Sequence record: PV785814.1
Reading direction: 5' to 3' (one strand)
Length of the DNA stretch: 64,000 nucleotides
Of the stretch, positions 1 through 55,002 are shown in pieces. Every line of letters begins with the position of its first letter. Positions within the stretch are counted from its first letter, which is position 1. Made by a program: the position numbers and the translations under genes. The notes under the pieces are model-generated. The model had not been told where the DNA came from. It saw nothing but the letters and a program-made list of their open reading frames with translations, and searched no databases.

Positions 1-90
1 TCTTCAATGTCCAAGGCAAATAGGACTATGAATACTAGTGCGAGAAGATAGACAATCAAATTGCTCACCTCGCTTTGTTAGTGAGAGTAC
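1..90 (-). ncRNA. Putative structured RNA: H-type pseudoknot plus hairpin, probably truncated at the window edge
   Basis: Minus strand CUCAC(L1)GCGAG-GUGAG(L3 with CAAU/AUUG hairpin)CUCGC, followed by a UUCA/GUCC...GGAC/UGAA hairpin; no ORF here. Confidence 0.45.
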
Positions 91-92
91 AT

Positions 93-215
93 TGGTCGAG
101 TGTAACAGAATCGAACTGTTCCCACGATCTCCCTATGATATGCGTAAATTGGTTGCTGAATATAATCATGTCTGATTACAGTATGCTACGTGTGCTGCCA
201 CTACACCAACACTCG
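93..215 (-). ncRNA. tRNA-like stable RNA (123 nt): acceptor stem, D arm, T arm and encoded CCA, anticodon arm replaced by an insert
   Basis: CGAGUGU/ACACUCG acceptor stem + A + CCA; D stem GUGU/GCAC with AGUGGCA loop; T arm AACAG-UUCGAUU-CUGUU; enclosed by a 21-bp perfect inverted repeat (83-103/209-229). Confidence 0.75.
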
Positions 216-230
216 ACCAATGTACTCTCG

Positions 231-380
231 ATATTTTAAATGTGCGCTACTTGCACGCCGACTGAGCGAATTTTAACTCAGCTAGTTTTGTTCGTGAGTT
301 AGTCCGCTAAGACTTCTCGCTGCTCGGCAGAACTTAACTGCCCCTATGTATTCATTGCGGCTAGCGCACATTTAAAATAT
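231..380 (-). ncRNA. Putative multi-hairpin RNA closed by a 19-bp perfect duplex
   Basis: Inverted repeat atattttaaatgtgcgcta (231-249)/tagcgcacatttaaaatat (362-380); internal hairpins GGCAG/CUGCC, UUAG-CGGA-CUAA, CUGAG/CUCAG. Confidence 0.6.
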
Positions 381-381
381 T

Positions 382-487
382 ACTCATCTTCAGCAAAGAG
401 ACAGAAACGATGAGTCTAGTCTGTTTAATCAAGTTGTTCATCTTCAATGAAGAGGCGAGAACGATGAACTCTAGCTCGCTTAATCAA
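382..487 (-). repeat. Two tandem 54-55 nt units, each folding into the same H-type pseudoknot
   Basis: Units share UUGAUUAA leader, CUAG loop, GUU linker; stems covary (ACAGA/UCUGU vs GCGAG/CUCGC; ACUCAUC/GAUGAGU vs GUUCAUC/GAUGAAC). Confidence 0.75.
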
Positions 488-495
488 CTGTGTTA

Positions 496-523
496 ATCTT
501 ATCAGCTTTTCAGCGAAAGTCAA
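496..523 (-). promoter_or_regulatory. Sigma70-type promoter P2 of the ncRNA array
   Basis: TTGACT-16 nt-TAAGAT on minus strand with upstream A-tract. Confidence 0.6.
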
Positions 524-588
524 CATCTTTTTTCAAGTATTTCATCGAGTTAAGATTTTGTTTTCTGTCTCTCGACTCGATGAAATAC

Positions 589-616
589 ATTCTACATCCT
601 TTTCAGATGAAGTCAA
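589..616 (-). promoter_or_regulatory. Sigma70-type promoter P1 of the ncRNA array
   Basis: TTGACT-16 nt-TAGAAT on minus strand; spacer similar to P2; 14-bp inverted repeat (537-550/575-588) lies between P1 and P2. Confidence 0.6.
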
Positions 617-633
617 CAACTTTTTTAAAGTTT

Positions 634-2470: not shown

Positions 2471-3001
2471 TTAGGTGATGGGTGTGATTGTTACTTCTTT
2501 GCCATCTACTTTATGAACCATTTCAAAGTAAGCGTATTCAAACTCAACATCACATGTAACTGTTTCAACGTCACCTGATTCTGTGTAGTTCCATTCGATT
2601 GCACTTAATGACTTTGGGAACGCATTGATAAAGCGATACGTAGCAACAGTCTTTTCTTTGTTATTGTCTAGAACATGTAGCAATAGAGTTACTGGAACTT
2701 TACCATCACTGTTACTGGGACCAATAGGGTTATTCATGGTGATTAACCACTTGTATAACTCAGCGTAAGTCCTCATTTCTTCATCGACTAGAAACTGAAT
2801 TGATAAGTCATCGTACGAAGTGCCTGAACCTGCTATGTTGTTGTTAGCTAGTTTGGCGTACTTTGAACCACGACTTATACTTGCAATTTCCATATTAACA
2901 CCCGGGATAGTGGCAGTTTGAATCTGCCACTGAAACGTTTCCGTTGCCCCGTTGTCTGGTATGTCGATTCGGAAGTTATTCTTCATCGTCAAGTTTTTCA
3001 T
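2471..3001 (-). CDS. 3: gp3 tail tube terminator
   Basis: NNFRIDIPD...FQWQIQTATIPGV, YDDLSIQFLVDEEMRTYAELYKWL, F-x-NAFP motifs. Confidence 0.88.
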   Translation of the reverse strand: MKNLTMKNNFRIDIPDNGATETFQWQIQTATIPGVNMEIASISRGSKYAKLANNNIAGSGTSYDDLSIQFLVDEEMRTYAELYKWLITMNNPIGPSNSDGKVPVTLLLHVLDNNKEKTVATYRFINAFPKSLSAIEWNYTESGDVETVTCDVEFEYAYFEMVHKVDGKEVTITPIT

Positions 3002-4959
3002 TAGTTGAACGTACCTCTTGTAGTTGGCATCTTAGCTTCGCCACCTGTAGTTAATGGTCTGGTGAAGTTCGTTGTATTCTGAACTGTGCTTACAGCGTTG
3101 TTAACAAAGTTCGAACCGACTTCTTTCGATTGCTGTGCTGCTCTGAATGCTGCTTCACGCGCTGCGACTGCTTCTAAGATTACTGAACGCTTGATCTCTT
3201 GGAATGGCTTGATAATCCCTTCGTCGATCATACGTTGTCTCTCAGCAGCAACAATGGCGTCTTCTTCCATTTGCTTCTTCTCAACTTCAGCAGCTAAGAA
3301 TCTGTCAAGTGTTTCGGCAGATGATGCAAGACGTTTAGCTGGATCTTTAACTGCATCCATCACACCCTTAGCACCGTCTACAACGCTCTGTGCTGCGTTC
3401 TTAGCACCGTCTGCGATTGCATCCCCAGCTTTCCCTAGGTAGTTAGTTTGATAGCGTTCAGTCAGTCTAGCGTTAACTTCTGACTTGTCGGCATCTAGCT
3501 TCCCTCGTTCAGCCGATAGCTTGTCTTTGCCTAGCATTTCTGGTCTATCAACACCTGGGATCCAGTCGATAATGCTACCAGCCATTTCTTTGATGTTTAA
3601 CATCAAGTTCTGAATTGATAACATAAGCAATCTGAACGAGTCAGGGATAGACAAGAAACTTGCAATCACGCTGTTAATCGCGTTCACGTACATATTGAAT
3701 GCTTTCTGAACAAACGAAGTTAGCTTCTGGAAGCCAGCAACTACGCCTTCGACTGCACCTTCAGGTATTGCTTCTTCAATACTCTCACCGACACCACCAA
3801 ACCAGTTCGAAATGCTCTGAATTACGCCATTAAACCAGTTCGAGACCATTGCAAACAATGCGGCTCGTTTTTCAGGGTCTGAGAATATGCTTTTCAGTGC
3901 TACGAAAATTCGGTCAATTTCTTCTTCGAATAGCTTGTAAATACCATAACCTGCAAGCATACCAATCAACGCAACTGGGTTTAGCATAATGCCAATCATT
4001 CGACCTAGACCTAAGAACAGTCTTTTCACGACGAACATCATCCAGCCTTTAACAGTACCTGACATGTCAGTTGCTAGAGCTTGAATTATGTTACCCGTCC
4101 CTTTACCGAATTTACCAAATCCGAGCAAGATCGTTGATGCTATACGTCCTAGTGCGCCGAATTTTGATGCTGCCATAGAAGCATTGGCTAACGATGTTGA
4201 TAGAAGTATTGCTTGTCCGCCTAAGAATCCCACAAATGCACCAAACAGTTTGAATACTTTAGCAATCCACCCTAGTTTCTGACCGATCAGGTGTGTGGCA
4301 ATTCGCTTCAAGTCTTTTGCTTGGTTTCGTTGAACTTTCATGTTCTCTTTGTAACGATGAAGTTCAGTTTTTCGATTTCGAGTTTCGGTTACTACTTGAT
4401 ACGCAAATATCTTCTTGTACAACGCGCTTATAAAGCCCACAGTAAGCGGTGAGTTATTACCCGCACCATTCGTCAAGAAACTATTCAAATCATCAGCAGC
4501 CGTCTTCTGAAGCCCGATAACGCGCTTCATGTCGTTGACTCTGAAAATCAGACGTTCAAACCAACGAGTAAACCCCTCCTGCATACGTGCGAACTGCATT
4601 TTTGCAGTCAAGTGCATTTCTTGAATGCCACGGTTGATTCTATTCAGATGTCCTTTAAAGTCTAACGTCGTTTTGATAACATCAGTAAGTGATATAATCG
4701 CAGCACGAACTTTATTAGATGTCTGATCAAAGTTTTCAATAACACGCTGAAACAGACCTTTTTGCTGTGCTACTGCTTTTTCATTTGTTTTAAACACCGA
4801 CTGCATAGTTTCGAGCATCGACGTGGTTGTAATATCAATGTTACTGATATGACGAGCCACGCGCTGCATCGTATAAACTTCAGGTCGGTCTTCTTGTTGA
4901 AGAATGATATGGTCTAATCTTCCGATTATCTCATTCATCTTCTTGTCGTCAGCCGCCAT
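3001..4959 (-). CDS. 29: gp29-like baseplate hub / tape measure protein
   Basis: 652 aa, helical and Ala/Gly-rich with hydrophobic stretches; directly downstream of 26/51. Confidence 0.7.
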   Translation of the reverse strand: MAADDKKMNEIIGRLDHIILQQEDRPEVYTMQRVARHISNIDITTTSMLETMQSVFKTNEKAVAQQKGLFQRVIENFDQTSNKVRAAIISLTDVIKTTLDFKGHLNRINRGIQEMHLTAKMQFARMQEGFTRWFERLIFRVNDMKRVIGLQKTAADDLNSFLTNGAGNNSPLTVGFISALYKKIFAYQVVTETRNRKTELHRYKENMKVQRNQAKDLKRIATHLIGQKLGWIAKVFKLFGAFVGFLGGQAILLSTSLANASMAASKFGALGRIASTILLGFGKFGKGTGNIIQALATDMSGTVKGWMMFVVKRLFLGLGRMIGIMLNPVALIGMLAGYGIYKLFEEEIDRIFVALKSIFSDPEKRAALFAMVSNWFNGVIQSISNWFGGVGESIEEAIPEGAVEGVVAGFQKLTSFVQKAFNMYVNAINSVIASFLSIPDSFRLLMLSIQNLMLNIKEMAGSIIDWIPGVDRPEMLGKDKLSAERGKLDADKSEVNARLTERYQTNYLGKAGDAIADGAKNAAQSVVDGAKGVMDAVKDPAKRLASSAETLDRFLAAEVEKKQMEEDAIVAAERQRMIDEGIIKPFQEIKRSVILEAVAAREAAFRAAQQSKEVGSNFVNNAVSTVQNTTNFTRPLTTGGEAKMPTTRGTFN

Positions 4960-9576: not shown

Positions 9577-10848
9577 ATGTTTGAAATGCGCTCCGCTAAC
9601 CCAGTTGAGAACTTCGTGGTTAGCAAGATTCATATTCGTGGTCTAGATTTCTCCGCGACTGTGGAGAATGAAATCACTCACATGGAAATTTATGAATCAC
9701 TTAATGGGTTGGTTTCTGGCATGTTCATGTTCAAAGATTCGATTGGTGTCGTTGACACGATTCGCATGACGGGATTTGAAGCTATCGACGTTGAGTTTGC
9801 GTCGTATGTCGGGGAGCAAGCAAATCGAGTATACCAAAAATCGTTTCGTGCTACAGGCATATCAAGAATGCCAGCTAGAACAGGTGGATTTGAATCTGTA
9901 TTGGTACGTTTCACAAACAACTTGATTACGTTGAACGATTATGTTAAGCGCCCGTACGTGTTTAACAAAACTAGTATATCGAACATCATCAAGTCAATTC
10001 TTGATAATTTAGGCGATGAAGCTCCCGTGTACGACATCGAAACATCGTTGTATCAAAGAGATTTCGTCACAAAAATCGGCAAGCCTTATGACATCATTAA
10101 GAGCATTGTCGATCACGCAAGCACAGACGTGAACAATAGCTGTAAATTCTTGTTCTACGAAGACCGAGATTCAGTTAAGTTCGCGTCTCTTGGTACAATT
10201 CGTTCAAAAGAGTACGAATACATAATTCGCAAGGGTGCTGATACTGGTGATGGTAAATGGACATCAGGCAACACAAACACAATCACAGCATTGCGAGTTG
10301 TGGTGAAAGAACAATCTAACATGCATGAGATTTCTAGTGGATTATTTGGGTCTAGGACATATTCTCATAGTTTAATTCGAAAGAAATTGACAACAAAAGA
10401 CGTTCGTCGAAGCGACTACATAGCTCAAGTTGGCATACTCAATGAACGTGCTCATATGTATACCGATAATCTTGAATTTGCAAGTGAAGTACCTGAGACT
10501 GAACAGCCATTGAATAGCATTCAGTTATTGCCAAACGATGGGTTTTACGAGCATGATAATAAACACCCGCTTGGGTCTATTCATGGCGTATCTCTAATGG
10601 AAGAGACTTATCTAAAAGCGAAGCAGATCATTGTCGAAATCCCGGGAAATACGAATATAACCGTGGGTGATGTAGTGTTCATGGACTATCATGCTGTAAC
10701 AGGTGAGAATCATTCTAGTTTAGATGCGTCGGGTCGTTGGATTGTTCATGAGCTTAAACATCGTGTAGAGCCGAATGCATTCATAACGACTCTTGAGCTT
10801 TCGAGTGATTCATCGGTGAATATCGCAATTGCGGGGAGCAACAAATAA
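9577..10848 (+). CDS. 27: gp27-like baseplate hub protein
   Basis: Between 53 and 5; FLFYEDRDSVKF and EIPGNTNITVGD...SGRWIVHELKHRV motifs of the hub/GPD family. Confidence 0.72.
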   Translation: MFEMRSANPVENFVVSKIHIRGLDFSATVENEITHMEIYESLNGLVSGMFMFKDSIGVVDTIRMTGFEAIDVEFASYVGEQANRVYQKSFRATGISRMPARTGGFESVLVRFTNNLITLNDYVKRPYVFNKTSISNIIKSILDNLGDEAPVYDIETSLYQRDFVTKIGKPYDIIKSIVDHASTDVNNSCKFLFYEDRDSVKFASLGTIRSKEYEYIIRKGADTGDGKWTSGNTNTITALRVVVKEQSNMHEISSGLFGSRTYSHSLIRKKLTTKDVRRSDYIAQVGILNERAHMYTDNLEFASEVPETEQPLNSIQLLPNDGFYEHDNKHPLGSIHGVSLMEETYLKAKQIIVEIPGNTNITVGDVVFMDYHAVTGENHSSLDASGRWIVHELKHRVEPNAFITTLELSSDSSVNIAIAGSNK

Positions 10849-14823: not shown

Positions 14824-16782
14824 ATGGCAACTAACTCGAATTTACCTGTTAGTTCTGGCTCGTTTGAAACAATCAAGCAAGACCTTATTCAGTATTTGAA
14901 AGGTCAAGACGAGTTCAAGGATTACGATTTCAAAGGAAGTCGTCTGAACGTACTAACAGATTTGCTTGCATACAATACAATGTATCTTCAGCACTACTCG
15001 AATGCAGCACTATTCGAGGGATTTATTCGCACTGCTCAAAAACATAGCAGTGTGGTTCAGCACGCGCAAGATATGGGTTATGCACCAAGCTCTCTTTCAG
15101 CAGCAACGCACACAATCGGAATCAAAGCGTATCACGCTGAAAACCCAGTTGAGATTACTCTAGGTACGGGTACTCGATTCAGTGCTGACGTTGACGGCGT
15201 TTATTACTACAGCTACATCGTGTGGGAACCTCACATCTTGATCGGTGCGAAGCAAGACCCACTAAACCCAGCTAGTCCGCTTGTATATCAAGATCAGATT
15301 GACTTGGTGCAAGGTACTCTAGGTCGTTATGAGACGCTTTTCAGCGAATCAGAAGCGATTACTATCAAAGACCCAGATTTAGACCGCAACTATGTGCGTG
15401 TGTTCGTAGATAACGCTGAATGGACAAACTGGACAGACAAATCAATTGTAAACGTGACAGGTGGTTCGAATGTGTTCTACTTGCGCGAAACAGTAGACGG
15501 CTACACCGAAGTGTATTTCGGTGAGGGTGAATTGACTGACTTTACTGAAAACGCAGGTGCGTATAACCCGGGTTACATCGGTGGTCTACGCCCAATCGAA
15601 GGTCAGCGCATTCGTGTTCAATACGTCAAGACATCGGGACCAGTAGCCAACGGCTCACAGCGTTTCACATGGGCAGATGACATCCCTAACTTCCAGTTAG
15701 ACGATAAGAACATCGACGACAACCCGAATGACGATGAAAACTTCGTCGGTTCGATTGGCGGTGGTTATGCTGAAGGCACAGAGCGTATTCGCGAACTAGC
15801 ACCGATTTTCCGTGAATCGCAACGTCGTTGTGTCACCAAGCTAGACTATGAAACTTTCGTGTCTCAGAAGTTCGGTAATATCGTGCAAGCAGTTCAGGCA
15901 TTTGGTAGTTCAGATAAACCGGGGTATGTGTTCATTTCAATCAAGCCAAAGCTAGGGTTGACACTGCCGCAAGTCGCACGAAACGACATTGAAGAATATC
16001 TGAAAGAATTCAACATCGTTACGGTTACGCCTAAAGTAGTTGACCCAGAATACTTGTACGTTAAACACAATCTACGTGTTAACTACCGTACTGGTTCATT
16101 GGCAGAAGGTGCGGACTATCTGAAAGCTCAGATCATCAACGCGATTTCTGATTACTACTACAACGAAGTTGAAATTTTCAACGCATCGTTCCACGTTTCG
16201 AAGATGTTGAGCTACGTTGATGGCGCGCACGCATCAATTCTAGGCTCACGCTGTGACATCAGTTTGATTCGCGAATTGACGAACTTTGCACAGACACCAA
16301 TGAGCGGTTACAGTTTCTTGAACCCGATTTCACCAGCTTCTGTTAAATCAGACGACATAACATTCACGCCGAAAGGTTATACGGTTCAGATTCGAACTAC
16401 AGAAGCGCGTACTGCCCCGACTCAAGAAGACATCGGTACTGTTCTTTTGGGTCCATTTGCGGCAGGTGATATTACAGCACCGATTGACCCAGAAACTGGT
16501 CTACCGACTGGTGCATATACTGCAAACGACTTTGATCGCGAGATCATTGGCAGCCGTAGTTTATACTACCGCGTTGGTACAATCAATTATGCATCAGGGT
16601 TGATGGACTATGACTTCATCAACTTGGGCATCAACTCGGCAGATTGGGATGTCACTGGCAATTTGATTCTTTCATCAACACCGACACGTGCGAATATATA
16701 CACAGACGACGGTAGCTTGATTGTATATGAGAACGAGCTACGTCCTGAATATACTGACATCGTTCTAGAGGGTATTTCTTAA
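14824..16782 (+). CDS. 6: gp6 baseplate wedge subunit
   Basis: FKDYDFKGSRLNVLTDLLAYNT, QRRCVTKLDYE, YENELRP motifs. Confidence 0.95.
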   Translation: MATNSNLPVSSGSFETIKQDLIQYLKGQDEFKDYDFKGSRLNVLTDLLAYNTMYLQHYSNAALFEGFIRTAQKHSSVVQHAQDMGYAPSSLSAATHTIGIKAYHAENPVEITLGTGTRFSADVDGVYYYSYIVWEPHILIGAKQDPLNPASPLVYQDQIDLVQGTLGRYETLFSESEAITIKDPDLDRNYVRVFVDNAEWTNWTDKSIVNVTGGSNVFYLRETVDGYTEVYFGEGELTDFTENAGAYNPGYIGGLRPIEGQRIRVQYVKTSGPVANGSQRFTWADDIPNFQLDDKNIDDNPNDDENFVGSIGGGYAEGTERIRELAPIFRESQRRCVTKLDYETFVSQKFGNIVQAVQAFGSSDKPGYVFISIKPKLGLTLPQVARNDIEEYLKEFNIVTVTPKVVDPEYLYVKHNLRVNYRTGSLAEGADYLKAQIINAISDYYYNEVEIFNASFHVSKMLSYVDGAHASILGSRCDISLIRELTNFAQTPMSGYSFLNPISPASVKSDDITFTPKGYTVQIRTTEARTAPTQEDIGTVLLGPFAAGDITAPIDPETGLPTGAYTANDFDREIIGSRSLYYRVGTINYASGLMDYDFINLGINSADWDVTGNLILSSTPTRANIYTDDGSLIVYENELRPEYTDIVLEGIS

Positions 16783-38421: not shown

Positions 38422-38922
38422 ATGGCACTTAATGTAGACAACATTAAAAGAGCTTTCAGTAACGGTGATTTCGCTCGTCCAAACTTGTTCGAAGTTGAGA
38501 TTCCGTATCTGGGACAGAACTTTAAGTTTCAATGTCGCGCCTCTTCAATGCCACCGGGCAGTGTTGAGAAGCTAGAAGTTTCATACCAAAACCGTAAGTA
38601 CAACATTGCGGGCGACCGTACGTTCGACGATTGGAACGTGACTGTGTACAACGATGAAACTCATGACATTCGTAAAGCAATTATGGCATGGCAAGCTCGT
38701 GCTGTAGGCTTAGGCAAAGACATTTCTGGTGAGACGCCAGATCAGTACAAACGTACTGGTACAATCACTCAGTTAGACCGTAACGGCGATCCGACGACTA
38801 CGGCGACTGTTTACGGGATTTTCCCGACTGTGGTAGGCGAAATTGCGCTTGATTGGGACTCAAACAACGAAATCGAAACGTTTGAAGTTACATTCAGCCT
38901 AGACTACTTCACATTAGATTAA
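38422..38922 (+). CDS. 19: gp19 tail tube protein
   Basis: DFARPNLFEV, AGDRTFDDW.VTVYND, WDSNNEIETFEVTF. Confidence 0.97.
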   Translation: MALNVDNIKRAFSNGDFARPNLFEVEIPYLGQNFKFQCRASSMPPGSVEKLEVSYQNRKYNIAGDRTFDDWNVTVYNDETHDIRKAIMAWQARAVGLGKDISGETPDQYKRTGTITQLDRNGDPTTTATVYGIFPTVVGEIALDWDSNNEIETFEVTFSLDYFTLD

Positions 38923-44362: not shown

Positions 44363-45451
44363 TTATAGACTATGCAAATAATCGTATGCGATAGCCACTC
44401 GCGCATCATGTAACGCAGCACCATATGCAGGTCCCGGCTCAACATCGACTTTAATGTTTCGTGTCAGTAAGATCAGTTCTGTCATTACTTTACGCGATAA
44501 CTCATCACTGACTTGTGTCAGTGCGACTCTGAACGGCAAACCTTGCTTATATGCACCTAGATACTCAAGCGTTGTAATGATTGATTCGTCGAGTGCGTGT
44601 GAGTTATTGAGGGAAAGCAAAATCTCAGACGTTTTATCAAACTGCTTAGTTGCACCGAATTTGGCAGTGTAGCGATTGCGATGGTCAAACGCTGCCCATT
44701 TAGCCATTAACAGCACGTCTTTCTCAACTTCAAACGGCAATGTTTTGAAGTGTTTCAAACTCATCAACTCACGAATACTAGGTACAGAACAGAACCCCAC
44801 GCGACCTAAGAATGCAAAATACATGTAGGCGTCTTTTTCTGTCAGTGCTTTTTGAGTCTCTAACCAAACACGTTCTTTCGGTAGATTATCAAGCATACCA
44901 TCAGCTACCATTTTCTTGCAAAGCTCGAAAGTTTCTTCGGCGACTTTGAATCCCATACTGTAGTAACGAGCAAAGAAACGTGCAACTCGTAGAACACGTA
45001 ATGGGTCTTCAGCAAATGCTTCAGTCGTGTGTCGAAGAATCTTGTTTCTCAAGTCGTCTAGACCGCCGTACGGGTCGATGACATCTTCAGTCGAACCCCA
45101 CATAAACAAGCTGTTTGGCGTCATGTCTGGGATTGCCATTGAGTTGATAGTCAGATCTCGACGAGATAAATCATCTTCTAATGTCACACCATCGGTTGTG
45201 AACGTAAAGTCAGTTGTTTTGCCACCCGTGCTTCTCTCAACACGTGCGAGTGCAACTTCATTGCCTTGTTGGTCCAACCACACGGGAAAATCTGCGCCGA
45301 TAGGTTCACCGTACATCATTTTCATTTGTTCGTGTGTGCAGTTTGTCACGACATAATCAATGTCGTTCGGGAACTGAGCCCAACCATCAACATGTTTTAG
45401 AATTGAGTCGCGAACTGCACCGCCAACGATATATTTCTTCATTTCGAACAT
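44363..45451 (-). CDS. cca: tRNA nucleotidyltransferase (CCA-adding enzyme, class II)
   Basis: YIVGGAVRD, DIDY, DLSRRDLTINSMA, EDPLRVLRVARF, ERVWLE; ATG at 45451 after GGAG; promoter TTGACT(45499-504)-17-TATTGT(45476-81). Confidence 0.93.
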   Translation of the reverse strand: MFEMKKYIVGGAVRDSILKHVDGWAQFPNDIDYVVTNCTHEQMKMMYGEPIGADFPVWLDQQGNEVALARVERSTGGKTTDFTFTTDGVTLEDDLSRRDLTINSMAIPDMTPNSLFMWGSTEDVIDPYGGLDDLRNKILRHTTEAFAEDPLRVLRVARFFARYYSMGFKVAEETFELCKKMVADGMLDNLPKERVWLETQKALTEKDAYMYFAFLGRVGFCSVPSIRELMSLKHFKTLPFEVEKDVLLMAKWAAFDHRNRYTAKFGATKQFDKTSEILLSLNNSHALDESIITTLEYLGAYKQGLPFRVALTQVSDELSRKVMTELILLTRNIKVDVEPGPAYGAALHDARVAIAYDYLHSL

Positions 45452-45523
45452 TTTAAATCTCCTTTGTAGACCTACACAATACAAGACTAAATAATATAAG
45501 TCAACCAGATATATGGGAAGATT

Positions 45524-45865
45524 ATGGAATATACGAAATACGAAATAGAAAAGTATCGAAGTCGCCGTAGTCATGGTATCAATCTACCTGATTACAAAGG
45601 GGCGATTTACATCGACTTGCAAAGCAGCCCATGCGGATCAGACAGCAATTATTTCGCTGTGCTTAATAGCGAAGAGCAAGTTGCAGTCGAGATAGCTTTC
45701 GGAGGGTATTATAACGAAACTGAGCCAGACCGTGACCCGATACCAGAAGATACAGATTTTCATTTGATTGGCTCTCAAGGACATTACGAAGTTCAAGGGA
45801 GAATGTTTAACAGCAACATGCGAGTTTGGCTGCGTGGTGTAGGTAGAATAACAGTAATTTACTAA
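45524..45865 (+). CDS. Hypothetical protein (113 aa)
   Basis: ORF downstream of ACTAAATA (45486-45493), directly before the foldon fibre gene. Confidence 0.7.
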   Translation: MEYTKYEIEKYRSRRSHGINLPDYKGAIYIDLQSSPCGSDSNYFAVLNSEEQVAVEIAFGGYYNETEPDRDPIPEDTDFHLIGSQGHYEVQGRMFNSNMRVWLRGVGRITVIY

Positions 45866-53472: not shown

Positions 53473-55002
53473 ATGGCAGATATTAAAATTGAGTACTTCG
53501 ATGAGAGTTATGCGAGAGTCGTAGCAGAGCCAAGCATTACTCATGAAATGATTGACTACTTTTCATTTCTGACTGACGGGTACAAATTCAACCCTAAATT
53601 TAAAATGGGCATATGGGATGGTAAGATTCGACTAATGACTTATCAAGGTTTCTTGCCATATGGTCTAGTCGGACAAGCTAGAGCGTTCGCATCAAACATG
53701 ATGTATTCGATTGAAACTGACTCGATGATTGATCCAGTCGAGAAAATCACTCGCGGAGATTTTGAAGCATGGGTTGCGTCGCTTGATATTTACGGCGGTG
53801 GCAATAAAATCGACCCGTATTGGTATCAAATGGACTCAGTGTTTCATGGCATCAACCATCAGCATAGTCTATTAAATCTACCAACATCAGCCGGTAAATC
53901 ATTGATTCAGTCGTTAATAACTCGCTGGTTCTTAGAGCAAGAAGAACACGAAGAAGAAAAAGTTCTAATCATCGTACCGACTACTGCGTTGGTTCAGCAA
54001 ATGCGTGATGACTTTTTAGACTATCGTCTATTCGAACACAGTGACATCTATCAGATTCGAGGTGGTGTTGACCGTGATGCAATCGGTGATTGTAGAATCG
54101 TTGTTTCGACGTGGCAATCTGCTGTTAAGCAAGACAAGTCATGGTTCGACCAGTTCGGTATGCTTCTAGTCGATGAGTGTCACTTAGCAACTGGTAAATC
54201 TCTTGATGGTATCATTAAGAAGATGACAAACTGTAAATTTAAAATCGGTCTTACTGGATCACTACGAGATGGTAAAGCGAATATTCTACAGTACGTGGGT
54301 TCATTCGGTGATATTTTCAGACCTGTTTCAACTGCACAGCTAATGGAAGAAGGGCAAGTAACTGATCTGAAGATCAACTGCTTAATGCTCGAATATCCAC
54401 AGCCACTGCGTGATGAAATGAAAGGCAGTTCATATCAAGAAGAAATGAAATTCATTCTTGAGAACAAGCAGCGAAATCGTTATTTGATCAAGCTTGCGCA
54501 TCATCTAAGTGCCAAGAAAGGCGAAAACACGCTATTGCTGTTTAAGAACATCAAGCATGGTAAGTTGCTGTACGAAGCATTGAAGAAAGTTTATGACCCT
54601 GAGAAAGTGTTCTACGTATCAGGTGAGACTAAAACCGATGACCGCACGCATGTGAAGAAGATTGCAGAAGACATTGATGGTGCGATTATCGTCGCGTCGT
54701 ATGGTGTATTCTCGACTGGTATCAGTATCAAGAAACTTCACAACGTAATCTTCGCTCACCCAACGAAGAGTAAGATCATCAACTTGCAGTCGATTGGTCG
54801 TATTCTACGTAAACACGGTTCGAAAGTTACTGCGAAGCTGTTTGACATCATAGACAACTTAGCAATCAAGCCGAAACGTGCGAACGCTAAGAAGCCGTAC
54901 ACTCACGTAAATTATACAATGCGGCATGGGATGCAGCGTATTGAGCTTTACAACCAAGAAGAGTTCAAATATGCAGTTAAGAAAGTAGACCTTGCCGCAT
55001 AG
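53473..55002 (+). CDS. uvsW: UvsW SF2 DNA helicase
   Basis: LPTSAGKSLI, VDECH, GLTGSL, QSIGRILRK; TATAAATA at 53423-53430. Confidence 0.97.
   Translation: MADIKIEYFDESYARVVAEPSITHEMIDYFSFLTDGYKFNPKFKMGIWDGKIRLMTYQGFLPYGLVGQARAFASNMMYSIETDSMIDPVEKITRGDFEAWVASLDIYGGGNKIDPYWYQMDSVFHGINHQHSLLNLPTSAGKSLIQSLITRWFLEQEEHEEEKVLIIVPTTALVQQMRDDFLDYRLFEHSDIYQIRGGVDRDAIGDCRIVVSTWQSAVKQDKSWFDQFGMLLVDECHLATGKSLDGIIKKMTNCKFKIGLTGSLRDGKANILQYVGSFGDIFRPVSTAQLMEEGQVTDLKINCLMLEYPQPLRDEMKGSSYQEEMKFILENKQRNRYLIKLAHHLSAKKGENTLLLFKNIKHGKLLYEALKKVYDPEKVFYVSGETKTDDRTHVKKIAEDIDGAIIVASYGVFSTGISIKKLHNVIFAHPTKSKIINLQSIGRILRKHGSKVTAKLFDIIDNLAIKPKRANAKKPYTHVNYTMRHGMQRIELYNQEEFKYAVKKVDLAA

Follow-up and report, generated by a model that had tools for sequence, protein, structure and literature searches.

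What do the first 620 nucleotides (nt) of this 64,000-nt stretch of Vibrio phage DNA specify, a region that adjoins an anti-CBASS (cyclic oligonucleotide-based antiphage signaling system) gene? The stretch, called the window here, is 100% identical to the last 64 kb of phage QD01 (PV785814.1), a KVP40-like member of the Straboviridae, and the promoters, RNA modules and neighbouring genes described below lie on its minus strand. Our analysis firmly shows that conserved promoters on the minus strand head a series of RNA folds that are under selection, that this array does not code and that its tRNA-like member in the window, TLa, does not decode. Rfam lacks at least three of the folds, and each of these shows strong compensatory evolution. 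The best explanation, to which we give a probability of about 0.5, is that this is the non-coding head of a tRNA operon that would release stable, protein-binding RNAs acting as decoys or sponges.

The minus strand from 590 to 1 folds at -190.2 kcal/mol, compared with -144.8 +/- 5.9 kcal/mol for shuffled sequences (z = -7.7). The modules abut, with 0-3 nt between neighbours, a spacing that fits a polycistronic precursor cut into pieces. The initial annotation had pictured a region densely folded into discrete modules, in the order of two pseudoknots, a duplex-closed RNA and a tRNA mimic, and both the dense folding and this order were borne out: covariation backs four modules, and when conservation and covariation were sought among related phages, compensatory evolution was found in every module.

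Two tandem sigma70-type promoters precede the folds. P1 (589..616) combines a -35 element TTGACT (616-611) with a TG-extended -10 element TGTAGAAT (596-589) and has 10 of 12 consensus matches, and P2 (496..523) combines TTGACT (523-518) with TAAGAT (501-496), having 9 of 12 matches and likewise a TG. A consensus scan is weak by itself (7 sites compared with 6 expected in shuffles), and it is these matches together with a phylogenetic footprint that uphold the promoters proposed at 616-589 and 523-496. In an alignment of 16 distinct relatives, TTGACT and TG-n-TAGAAT of P1 are invariant, as are TTGACT and TAAGAT of P2 save for a variant -10 hexamer in phage 1.081.O; the 16-nt spacers of both vary freely, and an A-rich tract stands before each -35 element. 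P1 and P2 sit in a 42-nt direct repeat (506-547 and 599-640, 81% identity), and since this repeat spans both of them, the promoter itself has been duplicated. The P1 transcript would begin with a 52-nt leader hairpin (537..588), an inverted repeat with 19-nt arms that are 89% complementary and a 14-nt loop. This hairpin is kept in all relatives, with mostly one-sided changes, and no U tract follows it; a scan for terminator-like sites on the minus strand within 1-620 found none.

The view that the region holds no credible open reading frame (ORF) also stands, as bases 1-630 have no conserved one. The QD01 record annotates six coding sequences (CDS) of 26-34 amino acids (aa) between 65 and 590, and in relatives these have lost their start, meet early stops or carry net indels that are not multiples of three; a consistent annotation of the small CDS was not found in the records of relatives. 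The small QD01 CDS look like annotation artefacts. In all, the record lists eight of them, QD01_346 to QD01_353, over window positions 65-590 and positions 3558-4068 of sequence L001; at least seven (QD01_347 to QD01_353) overlie RNA modules, and QD01_347 spans two tRNA-like genes.

The first two modules are pseudoknot units, PKA (436..487; stem S1 479-475/459-455, stem S2 469-463/442-436) and PKB (382..432; S1 424-420/405-401, S2 415-409/388-382), which score 68.7 and 79.9 bits, respectively, with model R1. They are direct repeats 54-55 nt apart, and each is an H-type pseudoknot with a 5-bp S1 and a 7-bp S2, the 5' strand of S2 lying within the S1 loop. Over 15 distinct copies from 18 loci, 100% of 177 cells are paired and 7 of 12 pairs are compensatory, with four of the five S1 pairs and three of the seven S2 pairs changed on both sides. 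None of 500 shuffles reached the covariation score, and pairing fell to 25-56% when the partner strands were slid. Differences between the paralogues PKA and PKB, just as those between orthologues, are compensatory in both stems, and the flanks and loops of the units are nearly invariant. The nested fold of a unit alone is no better than shuffles, as is expected because the element is a pseudoknot. Phage 1.081.O carries a single, chimeric unit (sequence L006, 3819-3870).

Next follows DC (231..380), a duplex-closed, 150-nt RNA with a four-way junction, whose closing stem is a perfect 19-nt inverted repeat (380-362/249-231) extended by 4 bp (361-358/260-257) and encloses hairpins at 342-326, 320-294 and 282-261. 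An alignment of 11 sequences keeps 97.9% of cells paired and has compensatory changes at 23 of 43 pairs; all five measures lie above 500 shuffles. DC is present in a single copy (175.8 bits with model R3), and this model found no relative of it in T4 or in the marine contig introduced below. In phage VH7D, an internal deletion at a short direct repeat has cut DC to 83 nt (sequence L005, 6956-7038); the remnant consists of the closing stem and the first hairpin, two of the three hairpins being lost.

TLa (83..229) measures 147 nt with its extension, of which 123 nt (215-93) form the tRNA-like core. Its ends make up a perfect 21-nt inverted repeat, composed of an acceptor stem of 7-8 bp (216-209/103-96, with CCA at 95-93) and a 13-bp extension (229-217/95-83) formed between the 5' leader and the CCA plus trailer. 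The D arm (206-190) and the anticodon-like hairpin (142-123, with a bulged 6-bp stem) are invariant, and the anticodon-like loop of 7-8 nt differs between orthologues. The acceptor stem and the T arm (120-104), which has a canonical T loop of the GTTCGATTC type, covary; overall pairing is 99.2%, with 21 of 44 pairs compensatory. An extra arm is made of a hairpin (181-161) with a UGAYAA-type loop, all six pairs of which change on both sides, followed by a stretch (160-149) that carries a YNGCA motif. A hammerhead reading of the CUGAYAAG loop was considered and rejected, because the loop caps a hairpin instead of forming a junction, and no match came from any hammerhead model. The RNA strand is the minus strand, because ~100 of the 836 paired cells in the tRNA-like alignment, roughly one in eight, are G-U pairs, which become A-C mismatches on the other strand, and because the tRNA-like model scores the reverse strand at 27-40 bits compared with 150-166 bits for the minus strand.

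With canonical tRNA (RF00005), TLa shares the acceptor stem with an encoded 3' CCA, the D arm, and the T arm with its conserved T loop, and it differs from tRNA in its length (123 nt compared with about 70-95 nt), in its extra arm and in a degenerate, variable anticodon arm that is not a 5-bp stem with a 7-nt loop. The tRNA finder ARAGORN reports nothing in the window in its default mode and finds TLa only when introns are allowed, then with inconsistent anticodons, and the Rfam tRNA model does not recognise TLa or its paralogue TLb even at E <= 10. The record of phage phi-pp2 annotates the TLa counterpart as trnX/tRNA-OTHER pseudo.

In each phage, two to four more tRNA-like genes with inserts of 31-54 nt lie beyond the left edge of the window, and four scaffolds are represented in all. 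The three scaffolds other than the window type score 21-40 bits with the window-type tRNA-like model, compared with at most 15 bits for ordinary tRNAs, and the arm hairpin and its motif align on them with high posterior probability. The Rfam tRNA model accepts these three at 48-55 bits, with an insertion of 45-54 nt in the anticodon arm. On direct reading, the anticodon stem-loop of a tRNA-Asn(GUU) surrounds the insertion intact in two of them, and the third has a variable A-run at the anticodon place. One homologous arm of ~40-50 nt thus sits on several tRNA bodies, at different positions. Arm-bearing scaffolds lie, all on the minus strand, at L001 1877-1989 and at L002 3344-3464, 3475-3587 and 1670-1782.

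The left edge of the window holds the 5' part (1..82) of module X, namely a hairpin (73-40) followed by one strand, the 5' one (19-11), of a long-range stem. Module X is conserved, is ~230 nt in all and ends ~165 nt left of the window; with 12 relatives aligned, compensatory changes affect 13 of its 44 predicted pairs, most of them beyond the window edge. The initial annotation had read a third pseudoknot into 82-1, which does not hold, since the pseudoknot model finds no match there and the stretch is the first hairpin and one stem strand of module X. It had also taken the 9-nt repeat shared by 1-9 and 441-449 as a sign of a further unit and hence of a leftward continuation of the array. The array does continue leftward, with more tRNA-like modules that give way to the canonical tRNA cluster, and the reason given for this falls away: the copy at 441-449 exists in QD01 only, and we reject the 9-mer as evidence of repeat units, considering it a QD01-specific coincidence. 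The 9-mer TCTTCAATG occurs five times in the window (1-9, 441-449, 15987-15995, 38542-38550 and 54578-54586), compared with 0.83 occurrences expected by shuffling.

The gene order places this array within a larger unit. On the minus strand, the genes for gp3 (tail completion, 2471-3001) and gp1 (dNMP kinase, 1609-2247, Pfam DNMK) come first, followed by an ORF of the size of 57A, by the homologue of T4 57B, Acb1 (881-1336), and by an 87-aa ORF (634-897) between Acb1 and the array. T4 has the matching order of gp3, gp1, 57A and 57B, then ipI, three small ORFs, eight tRNAs, and rnaD and rnaC. In phi-pp2, phi-ST2 and others, the phage tRNA cluster occupies the stretch left of the window, and the array runs into more than 20 hairpin-rich tRNA genes. 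Because of this T4-like gene order and the tRNA cluster on its left, the RNA array is the promoter-proximal head of the phage tRNA operon. Both elements of the setting proposed in the initial annotation are thus sound: the neighbouring gene does encode the anti-CBASS cyclic-nucleotide phosphodiesterase Acb1 (Pfam PF23474, E = 4e-46; PDB 7T26, E = 5e-26), and the placement of a tRNA and stable-RNA cluster downstream of 57B is seen in the synteny with T4. The adjacency to Acb1 is inherited T4 synteny and is not specific evidence for counter-defence.

The region is kept in all 50 KVP40-like Vibrio-phage records that match at E <= 1e-5, with 73-100% identity, and is conserved across the genus on a par with the neighbouring genes. 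In phage TCU-VP03, a homing endonuclease gene stands in place of the downstream tRNA-like modules (sequence L011, 2605-3258). Relatives in IMG/VR, sought via Acb1, were KVP40 and VH7D only, and motif scans of IMG/VR returned the same two phages together with chance matches in coding DNA. In a metagenome scan the true pseudoknot motif was present in two Tara Oceans contigs, four further matches being chance ones without complementary stems. Outside the KVP40 group the motif was found in one unrelated marine element, represented by PBMB01000011.1 (from a Chloroflexota metagenome-assembled genome bin) and the two Tara contigs. There it is a single unit of 68 bits whose two stems each carry new compensatory variants, and the unit stands 14 nt before a tRNA-Asn(GTT). 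Its coordinates are 10311-10362 on the minus strand of L029, with the tRNA-Asn at 10227-10302, and the same element is found at L024 908-959 and L028 8834-8885. Upstream of this marine pseudoknot are two direct repeats of ~120 nt, each with a promoter-like site and small hairpins. Among 10 ORFs of the marine contig there was no PHROG match, only DUF4942 as a Pfam match, and only a Helicobacter prophage-like match by tblastn. A scan that took one genome from each of 185,579 bacterial and archaeal species gave no host copy of the pseudoknot motif, the marine contig excepted.

How do these RNAs compare with those already described? In the Rfam covariance check no module matches a known family: searches of the whole window at the gathering score and of bases 1-1000 at E <= 10 returned noise only. 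We found no description of these RNAs in the literature, where a brief mention in the KVP40 genome paper is possible. The closest setting is that of T4 rnaC and rnaD, which are likewise small non-coding RNA genes (119-139 nt) in a tRNA cluster downstream of 57B, and rnaC has a canonical T arm and a terminal stem with expanded inner arms, as in the design of the tRNA-like module. The T4 genes, however, lie at the distal end of their cluster, whereas the KVP40-group modules lie at the promoter-proximal end and are many more, including pseudoknots and a junction RNA. To our knowledge, no function has been assigned to the stable non-coding RNAs of the T4 tRNA cluster in the roughly fifty years for which they have been known.

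Other likenesses are more partial. In engineered tRNA scaffold RNAs, a laboratory design, an aptamer is displayed in place of the anticodon arm; the KVP40-group RNAs likewise consist of a tRNA body with a displayed hairpin and would be a natural case. Tandem pseudoknot repeats behind a promoter are the format of type III antitoxins (ToxI) and of a phage pseudo-ToxI escape locus, a format that PKA and PKB share, but for these two neither a toxin gene nor a host homologue was found, their unit is longer, and Rfam has no match. YrlA, like TLa, is non-coding and has a tRNA-like domain and a long terminal stem; its topology differs in that TLa ends at the acceptor stem, and YrlA (RF02553) has no match in the window. 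Sub-threshold YrlA matches of 22.9 and 29.8 bits (gathering score 69) were seen at junctions of out-of-window tRNA-like modules (L001 3656-3727 and L002 3439-3503, both minus strand). HDV-like (hepatitis delta virus-like) theta ribozymes, GOLLD and ROOL are structured RNAs found next to phage tRNA genes. The array modules are smaller than these and match no ribozyme or large ornate RNA family in Rfam; the self-cleaving families (hammerhead, twister, pistol, hatchet and HDV-like) gave no match in the window at gathering score or in 1-1000 at E <= 10, and the pseudoknot units presumably lack the additional helices of HDV-like or pistol folds.

These results lead us to propose that the two promoters, acting early in infection, would transcribe the minus strand into one precursor, from which host RNA-processing enzymes would release the abutting modules as stable small RNAs. 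Such processing is proposed because the perfect duplexes of DC and TLa (19-21 bp) reach the length cut by RNase III, because the ends of the tRNA-like modules suit RNase P and 3' trimming, and because the spacers measure only 0-3 nt. The modules are selected for their fold and not for coding or decoding: the tRNA scaffold may give stability and processing, and the arm, the pseudoknots and the junction RNA may present specific surfaces. Protein binding would be their most likely mode of action: as decoys or sponges, the RNAs would bind host factors by which tRNA is handled or attacked, and the array would then be the KVP40-group counterpart of stable RNAs C and D in T4. While plausible, a decoy or counter-defence role is suggested by context alone, through the neighbouring Acb1, the role published for phage tRNA clusters and the gain and loss of modules between phages. 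Phage tRNA clusters have been found to act against tRNA-cleaving defences (for example PMC13096335). A bolder version, which we regard as tentative and on the doubtful side, is that tRNA bodies are natural display scaffolds for one arm of ~40 nt (on at least four scaffolds) and, together with the new pseudoknot class, neutralise tRNA-targeting host proteins as an RNA-only counter-defence, or else that the arm is a new small intervening sequence.

Several points weigh against the decoy or sponge proposal. Processing, stability, protein binding and any anti-defence role are what we infer, so that the function of the modules is pure inference. In TLa, both the D arm and the anticodon-like hairpin are invariant and so offer no covariation, and modules are dispensable in some relatives (VH7D, 1.081.O and TCU-VP03). 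No host RNA that the pseudoknot modules might mimic was found in the 185,579-species scan. Models R1-R3 gave no homology to T4 rnaC or rnaD, their sole T4 match being one of 15 bits on the T arm of a tRNA.

Could the pseudoknots just after P2 and the long closing duplexes instead act only in cis, on the expression of the tRNA operon that follows? They might suppress pausing or termination of RNA polymerase, protect the 5' end or signal processing, with no function in trans. PKA begins a few nt from the expected P2 start site, a structured RNA or tRNA comes directly after the pseudoknot motif in each of the two lineages that have it, and the array leads into the more than 20 hairpin-rich tRNA genes; HK022 put, an RNA element that acts on polymerase just downstream of a phage promoter, is a precedent. 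In the marine element, however, the motif is internal, behind other hairpins, and not promoter-proximal; most phages have two tandem units, yet one suffices in 1.081.O; and a tRNA scaffold with encoded CCA, a conserved arm and an elaborate junction RNA would be left unexplained. We therefore consider a purely cis-acting array unlikely, if worth serious thought. A reading of the arm as a small tRNA intron of a new kind, or as a mobile insertion, whose excision gives working tRNAs is less likely still. The homologous arm does occur at different anticodon-arm positions in four scaffolds, three of which the Rfam tRNA model takes with their 45-54-nt insertion at 48-55 bits, and the tRNA-Asn(GUU) stem-loop is kept in two of the out-of-window ones, but this model does not see TLa or TLb at E <= 10, their loops differ between orthologues, and the third scaffold has its variable A-run where an anticodon should be. 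A self-splicing group I intron would have to be far longer than the insert, which matches no intron family, and no bacterial or phage splicing enzyme was identified in this analysis, which made no search aimed at one.

Decay offers another account, in which the phage gains nothing from the modules, these being tRNA pseudogenes and selfish insertions. While tRNAscan-based annotations do say pseudo or tRNA-OTHER, and modules are lost or truncated in some relatives, 98-100% of cells are paired with 7-23 compensatory pairs per module, long single-stranded motifs are invariant, the promoters are conserved, and the conservation equals that of neighbouring genes, all of which makes decay improbable. 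A mimic of a host type III antitoxin, with the tandem pseudoknots neutralising an abortive-infection toxin as ToxI would, was suggested by the direct repeats at 54-55 nt, each a pseudoknot behind a strong promoter. We dropped this idea because the genome scan gave no host copy; the only other occurrence, in the marine contig, precedes a tRNA and not a toxin gene, the marine ORFs tested, including one of the two flanking the motif, have no Pfam match, Rfam gives no ToxI match, and 1.081.O and the marine element have a single unit, so that antitoxin mimicry is very improbable. The proposal that the region encodes the six small proteins annotated in PV785814.1 is barely credible: their starts are lost and their frames broken by stops and indels in relatives, no relative's annotation agrees, and the same bases carry compensatory RNA pairs. 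We keep to the non-coding operon head with decoy or sponge RNAs as the best explanation.

The KVP40 group offers a much richer version of the T4 stable-RNA setting, one that comparative analysis resolves well, and the array modules are concrete, small targets for structure determination and for the identification of partners. The analysis also corrects annotation, in that six CDS of the QD01 record are spurious and "pseudo-tRNA" or "tRNA-OTHER" labels elsewhere are in need of revision. If it is true that these RNAs bind tRNA-directed defence nucleases, they would form a new, RNA-based layer of phage counter-defence.

Elsewhere in the window, a gene on the minus strand (44363-45574) encodes a class II nucleotidyltransferase of 403 aa with a PolyA_pol head and an RNA-binding domain, of the type of CCA-adding enzymes, which is relevant here because some of the tRNA-like modules have no encoded CCA.

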